NCBI GenBank assembly: GCA_002269645.1
Contig: NIVC01002322.1
Coordinates: 62,001 to 126,000 of the forward strand
Length of the DNA: 64,000 nt
Direction of reading: 5' to 3'
Source of the DNA: Macrostomum lignano
Taxonomy: Eukaryota
Of this stretch, positions 33,762 to 49,195 are shown one piece after another (within the stretch, counting starts at the first letter, position 1; the number at the start of each line of letters is the position of its first letter). The notes below the pieces were generated by a model, which saw only the letters and a program-made list of their open reading frames with translations, was not told the DNA's origin and did not search any database. The translations under genes were made by a program, and so were the position numbers.

Positions 33762-36700
33762 CTGCCAAACAATATAATAAATCGCAATTCAAGGTGCACA
33801 ACCGCTGGTCTGTCCTCTACTGGCATGACAGCCGGCGGACCCGAAATAACCATCGGCTACTTCAGCCACCCGCCATTCGCCGATCTGGTCCACGGCCACA
33901 TCGAAGGCGTGTTCTGGAACCTCGCCAAAGAGACCCTCGCTGACTGTTTAGCTAGCGATAAAGTTGATCCAACACCTTCGCCAAAATATCGCCTTCGACG
34001 CTATCAGAATGAAGACGAACTGCTGCGCCACGGTCTGGCTGAGTGCAACCTCAGCTTCCCGGTCACGGGCACGCCGCTGCTTAGCCGGCTGGCGCTCGAC
34101 ACCGCATTCATTCCGGTTGTGAGCTCGCCAGGTGAGGTTCCAGCTGCGCTTCACTGAACCACTTCCCCCGACTCTCTGCTCTTTTGGTCACCTGATCTTG
34201 TTGTCTCATCCTGTTGTTGTTTGTTGTCTTGCATCTTCCAAAATCTGGTCTGGAAGTTATTAATAGTGAAATTTATTAGTATTTGAAGACCTGACACTCG
34301 CTTCAGACGTACCTGAAGTCTCAATTTTACTCATCTGATTAAATTTAATGCTACGACTTTGAGAAAAGTTCAGTTCGAACTCTGCGATAAAGTTATGCAG
34401 CTCCAATAGTGTACTCAGGCACTCACACGCTCACACCGAGTGCACAGCGGCCCAGGCTTTCTAATCGTCAGACATGTACACTGTCTGTGCCCTGGGGTGG
34501 GGTTGTCCCGCACTGCTGCGAATCGCACGACAACCCCACTGCCCAATTTTAGTGCACAGACTAGCAATCTTCGCCCCCCGTTGGGGGGCATCTGTGTAGA
34601 ATCTCTGCTCTCTACAAGTAACAATAATATCGCCAAATAAAGCCTTCACAAAGAAAACAGACAAAATACTCAAATGAAGTGCAATGCAAAAAGAAATCAT
34701 CCCAAATAGCAAGCATCCCCCAGATTGCAAGCATCCCCCGGATAGCAAGCATCCCCCAGAAAGCAAGCATCCCCCAGATTGCAAGCATCCCCCGGATAGC
34801 AAGCATCCCCCAGATAGCAAGCATCCCCCAGATAGCAAGCATCCCCCAGATAGATAGCATCCCCAAATAGCAAGCATCCTCCAAATAGTAAGCATCCCCC
34901 AGATAGCAAGCATCCCCCAGATAGCAAGCATCCCCCAGATAGCAAGCATCCCCCAGATAGCAAGCATCCCCCAGATAGCAAGCATCCCCCAGATAGCAAG
35001 CATCCCCCAGATAGCAAGCATCCCCCAGATAGCAAGCATCCCCCAGATAGCAAGCATCCCCCAGATAGCAAGCATCCCCCAGATAGCAAGCATCCCCCAG
35101 ATAGCAAGCATCCCCCAGATAGCAAGCATCCCCCAGATAGCAAGCATCCCCCAGATAGCAAGCATCCCCCAGATAGCAAGCATCCCCCAGATAGCAAGCA
35201 TCCCACAGAAAGAAAGCATCCCCAAATAGCAAGCATCCACCAGACAATAAGTAGCTAGTGCGACAATTTCCTTAGCATTATAGTGGCTCCTTTAAAATTC
35301 GCTTACTTTTACGTTTAAAAATCTGTATCTTTTATGTTGACATGGTGGCTCTTTTATGTTCTACATGGTAACTCTTTTATGTTTGACATGGTGTCTCTTT
35401 ATTGTTTGACATGGTGGCTCTTCTATGTCTGACATGGTGGCTCTTCTATGTTTGACATGGTGGCTCTTTATTGTTTGATATGGTGGCTCTTTAATGTTTA
35501 ACATGGTGGCTCTTCGATGTTTGACATGGTGGCTCTTCGATGTTTGACATGGTGGCTCTTAAATGTTTGACATAAAGTAACATATATGTTTGACATGGTG
35601 GCTCTTCAATGTTTGACATGGTGGCTCTTTTGGGTTTGACATGGTGGCTCTTTAATGTTTAACCTGGTGGCTCTTTATTGTTTGACACGGCGGCTCTTTA
35701 ATGTTCGACAAAGTGGCTATTCAATGTCTGACATGGTGGCTCTTAAATGTTTGACATGGTGGCTCTTAAATGCTTGACATGGTGGCTCCTTAATGTTCGA
35801 AATGGTGGCTCTTTAATGTTTAACATGGTGGCTCTTTTATGTTTCACACAGTGGCTCTTTAATGTTCGACGAAGTGGCTATTTAATGTTTGACATGGTGG
35901 CTCTTTTATGTTTGACATGGTGGCTCTTTAATGTTCGAAATAGTGGCTCTTCAATGTTTGACATGGTGGCTCCTAAATGTTTGACATAAAGTCACATATA
36001 TGTTCGACATGGTGGCTCTTCAATGTTCGACATGGTGGATCTTAAATGTTAGACGTGGTGGCTCGTTTAGGTTTGACATGGTGGCTCTTCAATGTTCGAC
36101 ATGGTGGATCTTAAATGTTAGACGTGGTGGCTCGTTTAGGTTTGACATGGTGGCTCTTTTATGGTTGACATGGTGGCTCTTAAATGTTTGACATGGTGGA
36201 TCTTAAATGTTAGACGTGGTGGCTCGTTTAGGTTTGACATGGTGGCTCTTTTATGGTTGACATGGTGACTCTTAAATGTTTGACATGGTGGCTCTTTTAT
36301 GGTTGACATGGTGGCTCTTAAATGTTTGACATGGAGTCACGTATATGTTTGACATGGTGCTTCTATTATGTTTGGCATGGTGGCTCTTTTATGTTTGACA
36401 TCGCGCTTCTTTTATGTTTAGCAGTTTCGTGTTTTAGGGTGTTTTAATAAAAAAAATCTTTTTGCACTACTGAGATTCGAACCCAGGTCGCTACATTAGC
36501 ATTCCAGTCTGTTTGCAACTTGGCTATCTCTTTTCAATTGGAGAACATGAATTGTGGCCCTTATAATTCAATTCTTACAGAATGTCGATTGGAGTAAAAA
36601 GTTATGACATAATCAATTTCTCTGTCAGCCAGTATCAGTCTCAATTTAAGTTAGCAATATGGTTACGCAATTTAAATCAAGTCGTGTGTGCATTTCTTCG

Positions 36701-48700: not shown

Positions 48701-49195
48701 CTCACTCCGCCACCCACCTCACTTCGCCAGCCACTCGACTCCACCACTCGCCTCACTTTCTCTCTGCCCAATTACTCTGGCACAGTTGTGGAGCGCAACT
48801 GGAAATACGACAGGCAGAAGAAGGAGGCGGAGTTCGGCCGCCAGCTGGATCTGAAGTCCTACTATCGACAGCACTACCGGAAATGCGGCGTCGAAGGCGG
48901 CGGCGGCGGCGGCGGCGGCGGCGTCGGCGGCGGAAGCGCGGCCACCACGCCGACTGCTGGCGGCCAGTCGGGTGGGTCGGGCGGCTGCTCAATGTCCAGG
49001 CCGATCACCATCGAGACGCTGCACGCGGCGACGCTGGACGAAGCATCCGCGGACGGTGGAGCGACGGAAGCTCCTGGCAATAACGGATCCGGGATGATCA
49101 ACAATCGTCGGCTCTGGTGCCAGGAGGCCGGCAGCGACAGGCTCGACGAAGAGGCGGAAGGCGAGGCTGAAGCGGAGGAAGCGACTCCGATGTGA
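33762..49195 (+). CDS. Ligand-gated ion channel with iGluR-like S1/S2 lobes, M1-P-M2 core with K+ filter TTVGYGD and a third TM (GluR0/AvGluR1-like). Exons 33762-34131, 42274-42410, 42823-42916, 43878-44037, 46442-46505, 47339-47628, 48027-48186, 48786-49195; 5-prime exon(s) not found
   Basis: The spliced product reads ...[11 protein letters not shown]...FPVTG...FIPVVSSP|GAVW...[22 protein letters not shown]|[17 protein letters not shown](x)[14 protein letters not shown]|[37 protein letters not shown]...|[10 protein letters not shown]...|...GALIEHY...|...[20 protein letters not shown]. All introns are GT-AG with matching phases, apart from one 1-nt discrepancy in exon 3. Confidence 0.85.
34561..37005 (-). 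mobile_element. Complete non-autonomous Helitron copy (2445 bp) in channel intron 1
   Basis: 5-prime TCCTATATACTAAAAATG at 37005. The 3-prime end is a perfect hairpin GCCCCCCAACGGGGGGC + GAAGATTG + CTAG at 34564-34561, followed by T. The 18-mer array is expanded to about 30 copies. Confidence 0.85.
37006..40691 (-). mobile_element. Compound Helitron (5-prime arm at 40691, satellite, truncated 3-prime arm ~38830-39200, second satellite, complete 3-prime end at 37006)
   Basis: TCCTATATACT starts at 40691 and hairpin+CTAG ends at 37006, directly abutting the TC of the next copy. The internal 3-prime arm lacks the hairpin and CTAG. Confidence 0.8.
43555..43785. repeat. Degenerate ~60-bp tandem repeat (agacctttcagaccagttgaaggtcatccgaagtcatgtgacccc...)
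   Basis: About 4 diverged copies in channel intron 3. Confidence 0.75.
44055..44850. repeat. 24-bp minisatellite (aggtggctgaagagaatgagattc)
   Basis: About 33 copies immediately after the exon 4 donor; source of the [16 protein letters not shown] ORFs. Confidence 0.95.
45152..45538. repeat. (GACA)n microsatellite, ~390 bp
   Basis: Nearly pure tetranucleotide run. Confidence 0.97.
46580..47270. repeat. 41-bp minisatellite (gggagtgaggtgtgtgtctgactgaggggttgatgtgcgta)
   Basis: Period 41; degenerates toward the right end. Confidence 0.9.
47640..47970. repeat. 40-bp minisatellite (tgaggtgggtggctagatgagggtctataggggcaaggag)
   Basis: About 8 copies in channel intron 6. Confidence 0.9.
48470..48755. 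repeat. C-rich degenerate repeat (ccacctcactccgcc)n
   Basis: Short-unit tandem copies in channel intron 7. Confidence 0.8.

Follow-up and report, generated by a model that had tools for sequence, protein, structure and literature searches.

Fast chemical inhibition in animals is normally ascribed to Cl- channels of the Cys-loop family. Elsewhere, on the plan of the glutamate receptors, the bacterial channel GluR0 is reported to be K+-selective (Chen et al. 1999, as cited in PMC12332018). Adineta vaga has AvGluR1, a protein described with the full architecture of eukaryotic ionotropic glutamate receptors (iGluRs) (PMC12332018), in which glutamate-receptor architecture, including an extra transmembrane helix, goes together with the TXVGYG signature (PMC12332018, PMC3483616). 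This article concerns a gene of Macrostomum lignano that also brings a K+-channel filter together with an iGluR-like plan. The gene lies on contig NIVC01002322.1 (GenBank assembly GCA_002269645.1), in a stretch of 64,000 nucleotides (positions 62,001 to 126,000 of the forward strand) that we call the window and within which all coordinates below are counted. On the + strand, from 33762 (or from its first ATG at 33825) to 49195, eight exons can be joined, with GT-AG at every border.

An original prediction, made from the letters of the sequence, had seen here an animal gene for a channel of iGluR architecture with a potassium filter, perhaps with a ligand other than glutamate. Its interpretation is supported at the level of the family; the observation itself was confirmed in part. 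We think it probable, with moderate confidence, that the locus is an M. lignano gene whose product is a subunit of a tetrameric channel in the GluR0/iGluR superfamily, gated by an extracellular ligand and conducting K+. The interesting object is the family rather than the imperfectly assembled copy in the window.

A potassium-channel pore signature

The channel module reads S1-M1-P-M2-S2, two extracellular segments either side of a pore, followed by a third transmembrane helix. Pfam Ion_trans_2 scores 56.1 bits on the protein as assembled and 58.7 bits with its frame restored (a point to which we return), well above the gathering cutoff of 22.5, and the best sequence matches of the protein in the Protein Data Bank (PDB) are the pores of KcsA and of Kv channels. 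In an alignment of 22 sequences from animals, bacteria and protists, W170, W171 and the stretch from T178 to D183 (TVGYGD) are invariant. The K+-channel filter of the original prediction is thus on firm ground. As for the gate motif SYTANLAAF and the non-GYG pore loop with its Q/R/N site, by which iGluRs are known, the window gene has neither: its M2 carries FTA and its loop reads TTVGYGD. By analogy with channels that share this signature, the window channel would be expected to select for K+.

Extracellular lobes and ligand site

Through S1, M1, P, M2 and S2 the window protein is colinear with bacterial GluR0-like proteins. When animal and bacterial GluR0-like segments were aligned with hhalign, the pore returned a probability of 100% and S2 one of 95.5% (E = 1.6e-8). 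The lobes can also be followed on their own. A ligand-binding-domain (LBD)-only profile, consisting of the animal S1-GT-S2 lobes with the pore removed, was searched against all PDB sequences at E <= 10 and gave eight matches. These include AncQR (1.6e-4), GluR0 Slr1257 over both lobes (1.3e-3) and 2pyy, another iGluR homologue from bacteria (7e-3); domains of animal iGluRs or of AvGluR1 are not among the eight.

The fold points the same way. An AlphaFold2 model of P0005, a full-length relative, has a mean predicted local distance difference test score (pLDDT) of 82.8 and passes 90 across most of the ectodomain; it shows helices for M1, P, M2 and M3 and folds the ectodomain into two alpha/beta lobes. 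Foldseek places this model closest, among PDB structures, to the LBD-transmembrane domain (TMD) chains of GluN1/GluN2 and GluA1-4 (E ~1e-13, probability 1.00, 430-480 columns). Between this match, the S2 alignment and the path of the LBD-only profile to the GluR0 LBD, the claim of an iGluR architecture holds up well, and structure prediction, which the original prediction had named as a check, did return a two-lobed, iGluR-like ectodomain for the relative modeled.

What might bind between the lobes? In GluR0 the Asp of MFDRP binds the amine of the ligand, and an Arg in S1 binds its alpha-carboxylate. A family-conserved Asp (Glu in the GALIEHY of the window protein) aligns with the D of MFDRP, and a family Thr (Ser in the NGSY of the window protein) aligns with the TT of GluR0. 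The R of TPER in GluR0 S1 aligns with variable residues, an S in the window protein (with an R adjoining) and E, T or D elsewhere, in a loop whose alignment is uncertain by about one residue. The original prediction could not recognize the canonical S1 Arg, and alignment to GluR0 agrees that the position is variable. Because the Arg for the carboxylate is missing, with the Ser/Thr and the acidic amine-binding residue of S2 kept, the ligand is probably something other than a standard alpha-amino acid, as far as sequence can tell, and the earlier suspicion of a non-glutamate ligand looks reasonable on the same evidence. The family has nearly invariant cysteines of its own: a CC pair in S1, where the window protein has one Cys, and a C in S2.

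Relatives in cnidarians and hemichordates

An exhaustive hidden Markov model (HMM) search turned up at least 495 clusters (50% identity) at E <= 1e-30. Of these, the top 150 all lie below 1e-68, and most of them cover most of the profile. Full-length relatives reached in another search, by an animal profile, come from the cnidarians Dendronephthya and Clytia and from the hemichordates Saccoglossus, Ptychodera and Glandiceps. Named members also occur in Nematostella, Hydra, Hydractinia, Montipora and Rhopilema, the other clusters sampled being unnamed transcriptome contigs. NCBI calls the relatives "uncharacterized protein" throughout the clusters sampled, and the Macrostomum models carry automatic names. 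No description of the animal family was found in open-access papers and bioRxiv, a literature in which GluR0, AvGluR1 and the classical animal classes are covered. The poorly described metazoan family of the original prediction is therefore real enough, with hundreds of members.

No match to ANF_receptor, the amino-terminal domain, was detected in the window protein or in the 21 relatives scanned. What precedes S1 in full-length relatives is a signal peptide with only some 50 residues, or CUB plus Ig. Among cnidarian members, P0049, P0053, P0076 and P0089 being cases in point, the channel module is in some fused to CUB plus Ig and in others placed at the end of proteins of 2000-4000 residues. 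In one Nematostella protein of 4084 amino acids it occupies residues 3600-4052, and a longer member of that cluster is named "F5/8 type C domain-containing". These giant cnidarian ectodomains may be real, or they may be merged gene models. A further relative, P0004, is encoded at 1617-3062 of a 5.7-kb metagenome contig from ENA (L004, 38% GC) by a nearly unbroken ORF, intronless across residues 58-536 of P0005, whereas the Macrostomum gene has at least seven introns.

Species, exons and splice sites

Searches with the spliced product reach M. lignano UniRef proteins at E = 9e-134, with unnamed animal relatives following at 1e-26 to 1e-34, values far removed from chance. One of the former, P0064 (UniRef A0A1I8G7B1, 294 amino acids), is identical to exons 4-8 except that its gene model omits the last 22 residues of exon 4, and this exact match identifies the window as M. 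lignano. Together with seven GT-AG introns that hold satellites, it bears out the claim of an animal, intron-containing gene. The species has further copies. P0001 and P0065 represent a second, near-identical copy with about seven amino-acid differences, and P0002, P0003 and P0057 (named "PBPe domain-containing" in UniProt) are more distant paralogues. P0003 has TVGYGG in place of TVGYGD and its sequence degenerates past M2, as a poor gene model or a decaying copy might. A short segment of the window (60026-60163) matches the C-terminal part of P0002, a part unrelated to the channel (tblastn, E = 7e-6). It is probably a repeat or a fragment of a neighboring gene, since P0002 is a chimeric gene model.

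Exon 1 (33762-34131, +) encodes S1, the upper lobe of the extracellular clamshell, and its peptide includes FIPVVSSPG. Its product aligns with the first strand and helix of the bacterial GluR0-like S1, and at 33843-34130 it is matched by the paralogues P0002 and P0003 in tblastn. Upstream of the ATG the reading frame stays open to 33762, directly after a pyrimidine tract and an AG (33760-33761), so exon 1 is probably internal, with the true 5' end of the gene probably beyond the interval 33762-49195 given in the original prediction. Intron 1 (34132-42273, 8.1 kb, +) holds arrays of 18-bp and 23-bp satellites and two copies of a composite repeat. Exon 2 (42274-42410, +) encodes the end of S1, the pre-M1 segment and M1. 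M1 opens with a WP motif, both residues of which never vary in a five-sequence animal alignment, and in wider alignments the W of VLVWFM is invariant or nearly so.

Exon 3 (42823-42916, +; alternative acceptor at 42828) covers the M1-P linker, the pore helix and the first half of the filter. The filter is split by an intron: its exon 3 part ends at 42916 and YGD begins at 43878, exactly where the original prediction had put the break. All the peptides quoted there are likewise present on the + strand. Exon 4 (43878-44037, +) supplies YGD, then M2 (the inner helix, equivalent to M3 of iGluRs) with its FTA motif and the M2-S2 linker, and is matched in tblastn by nearly all K+-pore homologues. 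S2 starts in exon 5 (46442-46505, +) and has its main part in exon 6 (47339-47628, +), which reads LISDWRSLL...GALIEHY...NSCMAAT. The acceptor of exon 6 is ...cctcag followed by TGATCAGC..., and a start at 47339 keeps the frame. The exon 5/6 junction peptide that results is also found in P0001 and P0064, with a tblastn match at 47338-47634. Another acceptor, at the AG before 47370, was rejected, as stop codons arise and the frame is broken. Exon 7 (48027-48186, +) encodes the S2-M3 linker and the third transmembrane helix (equivalent to M4 of iGluRs), which has a counterpart at the matching place in the P0005 model. Exon 8 (48786-49195, +) encodes the cytosolic tail, in which a helical segment is followed by an acidic, Gly-rich end of low complexity. 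The stop codon (TGA) occupies 49193-49195 (+), and a candidate polyadenylation signal, AATAAA, lies 137 nt past it (49332-49337, +).

All 14 splice sites are intact. The eight-exon splicing that had been proposed thus survives as to its borders, all GT-AG, and its relatives, which match; it does not survive as a single clean conserved frame, on account of a break in exon 3 that we weigh below.

Introns and repeats

The window is repeat-rich eukaryotic DNA, and nearly every intron of the gene is filled by a tandem-repeat array. Between 34580 and 40700, intron 1 carries copies of a composite element made up of two satellites, of 18 bp (CCCAGATAGCAAGCATCC) and 23 bp (TCTTTAATGTTTGACATGGTGGC), plus a unique tail some 600 bp long. 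The copies at 35585-37005 and 39265-40691 share 88.6% identity, and outside the gene there is an inverted copy at 13745-15162. The element looks like a mobile element with internal satellites; ARAGORN found no tRNA in the tRNA-like stretches of the intron. Intron 3 has a shorter 69-bp repeat (43542-43779). Each of introns 4 to 7 holds at least one tandem array, at 44054-44856, 45154-45538, 46573-47188, 47644-47978 and 48429-48757, with periods of 24, 4 (AGAC x96), 41, 40 and 17 bp, respectively. Away from the gene, a 5.4-kb tandem duplication at 16831-27652 (16831-22242 and 22242-27652, 99.7% identity) is either recent or an artifact of assembly, and an array with a 48-bp period at 26837-29360 produces open reading frames (ORFs) of 820 codons on both strands, which are an artifact of the repeat and not genes.

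Weighing the alternatives

Several observations pull against a ligand-gated K+ channel encoded by an intact gene, and they are best taken together. An extracellular, N-terminal S1 needs a signal peptide, and the window protein as modeled has none. Nor was an upstream signal-peptide exon (ATG, hydrophobic core, consensus donor) found in phase 0, the only candidate being unconvincing and 33 kb away. Neither SBP_bac_3 nor Lig_chan-Glu_bd matches any animal member, window protein and scanned relatives alike, and the hhalign probability for S1 is 17.9%, weak but in register. The fold was modeled on P0005, about 25% identical to the window protein, and not on the window protein itself. No transcript-derived protein of the window gene occurs in a collection of 5.8 billion proteins. 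Then there is exon 3. When reading begins from 42823, the conserved acceptor, the exon first yields the linker that is best conserved across the family (its N and F are invariant even in bacteria), then loses the frame at a one-base deficit (42875-42877, +; GG where homologues imply GGG) and meets a TGA at 42904-42906. In the gene model P0065, from the near-identical second copy, exon 3 is skipped and an intronic segment appears in its place, which is compatible with a real lesion.

Because the Pfam lobe models match no animal member, homology of the lobes is a matter of profile methods and fold, and because the model is that of a relative, the evidence from fold applies to the family and not to the exact window sequence. 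The profile searches named alongside the original prediction gave a divided answer. Ion_trans_2 passes and SBP_bac_3 has no match; Lig_chan, its match limited to M1-P-M2, scores 24.3 bits as assembled and 32.2 bits with one G restored, against a cutoff of 30.8. In the tblastn matches of P0002, P0004 and P0005 alike, frame 1 gives way to frame 3 at 42876-42882, and one added G (TTCTGG[G]AAGG) restores ...GFWEGWWWAF, as in the paralogues P0002 and P0003. From the second acceptor at 42828 the frame stays open, but the conserved linker motif is replaced by unrelated residues. Judged by its homologues, then, the copy as assembled would encode the conserved protein only with one more G in exon 3, and the deficit reflects either an error of assembly or a disabling mutation of recent date. 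Independent contigs were sought by exact look-up of window ORFs over exon 3 (both strands) and exon 1, and none was found.

If the mutation is real, the window copy would be a young pseudogene of the family, its protein truncated before the filter by a one-base deletion, with function residing in P0002, P0003, P0057 or the second copy. The frame switch and the TGA behind it are what such a pseudogene would show, the deficit sits in a short GG/GGG run rather than a long homopolymer, and the P0065 model, the want of transcript-derived proteins and the want of a signal-peptide exon fit as well. Yet both halves of exon 3 keep every conserved residue, with no further lesion, the other exons are intact, and an in-frame alternative acceptor exists. 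Single-base indels are, moreover, a common error of long-read assemblies. A real lesion would have to be very recent, given that conserved residues, other exons and splice sites are all intact, and we regard a pseudogene as doubtful, while giving it real weight. A bacterial origin, by contamination or by recent horizontal transfer of a GluR0-like gene, deserves almost none. It is true that, after the animal relatives, the next best matches are bacterial proteins with SBP_bac_3, Lig_chan and Ion_trans_2, but these span only 13-36% of the query and lack the third transmembrane helix and the cytosolic tail, and full-length relatives are present in the genomes of many cnidarians and hemichordates. 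On the strength of seven spliceosomal introns, filled with eukaryotic satellites, we reject contamination outright.

Two further alternatives accept the gene and dispute what the channel does. The family might consist of K+ channels in which the ectodomain has given up small-ligand binding and serves as a structural, adhesive or protein-binding module, the pore being constitutively open or gated in some other way. The S1 Arg for the ligand carboxylate is not conserved, the Pfam models for such lobes fail on all animal members, and some cnidarian members carry CUB and Ig (and one cluster the F5/8 type C name), domains that typically bind proteins or matrix. Against this, the Ser/Thr of S2 and the acidic residue at the ligand-amine position are kept across the family, the two-lobe fold is predicted with high confidence over most of the ectodomain, and ligand gating is the simplest account of a clamshell and linker geometry kept as in GluR0 and iGluRs; we think the loss of ligand binding unlikely. 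Less likely still, indeed distinctly improbable, is that the channel, for all its GYG filter, passes cations without selecting K+ and is hence excitatory. Some channels with GYG-type filters, such as HCN, also pass Na+, and the family is known from sequence rather than from current measurements. But the signature TTVGYGD, in full, and the WW pair of the pore helix do not vary, the match to the KcsA and Kv pores is close, and bacterial GluR0, with the same signature, is the channel cited as K+-selective in PMC12332018.

How the channel might work, and why it would matter

We return, then, to a K+-conducting, ligand-gated channel. Established for it are the structure of the gene, its species, the K+-pore signature, membership of the family and, for one relative, an iGluR-like fold; the tetramer, the selectivity for K+, the gating by a ligand and the inhibitory role are inferred. 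In such a channel S1 and S2 would form a bilobed clamshell interrupted by M1, the pore helix, the TTVGYGD filter and M2, and four subunits would make the pore, by analogy with GluR0 and iGluRs. A small extracellular ligand would close the S1/S2 clamshell, and closure would pull on the M2-S2 linker and open the gate at the inner helices. K+ would then flow through the selectivity filter and the cell would be hyperpolarized, so that the receptor would be inhibitory: a K+-selective filter implies, in this proposal, that activation hyperpolarizes the cell. The third helix would pack outside the pore, like M4 of iGluRs, and the conserved cytosolic helix may help assembly.

A broader proposal is more tentative, and we offer it as a possibility somewhat short of probable. 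There may be a natural animal family of K+-conducting, hence inhibitory, receptors of iGluR architecture, abundant in cnidarians and retained in hemichordates and macrostomid flatworms, with a ligand that is not a standard alpha-amino acid, standing at a "GluR0 plus M4, no amino-terminal domain" stage between GluR0 and modern iGluRs. If this is true, a ligand-gated K+ channel on the glutamate-receptor plan would be a different route to inhibiting cells. It would also mean that the long-standing model deriving iGluRs from the fusion of a binding protein with a K+ pore had a living intermediate, one that combines a third helix already gained with a K+ filter still kept and no amino-terminal domain. 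A light-gated, potassium-selective glutamate receptor has reportedly been engineered for neuronal silencing, so that a natural counterpart whose ligand was defined might prove useful as a tool. Members of this large family occur in several laboratory models, among them Nematostella, Hydra, Hydractinia, Clytia, Saccoglossus and Macrostomum, which makes all of this directly testable.

Comparison with known systems

GluR0 (Slr1257 of Synechocystis) and the bacterial GluR0-like proteins share the plan S1-M1-P-M2-S2, a clamshell of the periplasmic-binding-protein type interrupted by a K+ pore. They have the same TVGYGD filter, and share with the window protein an N..EF motif in the M1-P linker and FTA in M2. 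GluR0 is also the best characterized channel that the animal LBD-only profile reaches. The differences are equally clear. In the window protein S2 is followed by a third transmembrane helix and then by some 145 residues of cytosolic tail, both kept in animal relatives, whereas the bacterial proteins end after S2. Compared with GluR0, its ectodomain is too divergent for SBP_bac_3, lacks the ligand-binding Arg and has the family-specific cysteines, and it is encoded by an intron-rich animal gene. A GluR0-like protist protein, P0014 (an MMETSP transcript), resembles the window protein, to which it is 15-18% identical, in that its S1 and S2 are like those of bacterial solute-binding proteins, its pore reads TMTTVGYGD and a third transmembrane helix leads into a long tail in the cytosol; it differs in that its ectodomain matches SBP_bac_3 and keeps the Arg-rich T-x-x-R region.

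With animal iGluRs (AMPA, kainate, NMDA, delta, epsilon and lambda receptors, and the related ionotropic receptors) the family shares the LBD-TMD fold, with three helices and a re-entrant loop, and they are the best structural matches of the family model. The start of the gate is common too, an aromatic residue followed by T-A (FTA in the window protein, YTA in SYTANLAAF), and the acidic residue of S2, which was aligned to the Asp of GluR0 only, presumably occupies the position of E705 in GluA2. In contrast to iGluRs, the family has a K+ filter and not a Q/R/N-site loop, no detected amino-terminal domain and no conservation of SYTANLAAF, and no canonical iGluR is among the sequence matches of the window protein or of the LBD profile.

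AvGluR1 invites the closest comparison, both it and the family being animal proteins with an extra transmembrane helix and a filter of the TXVGYG type. The architecture of eukaryotic iGluRs includes an amino-terminal domain; AvGluR1 is described with that architecture in full, whereas the window family does without the domain, or has CUB/Ig in some cnidarians. LBD structures of AvGluR1 are deposited in the PDB, and the LBD profile reached GluR0 and not AvGluR1, so the two are not close relatives by sequence. The family is best filed within the GluR0/iGluR superfamily, with a pore and lobes like those of GluR0 and an extra helix like that of iGluRs, without an amino-terminal domain, and as distinct from AvGluR1.

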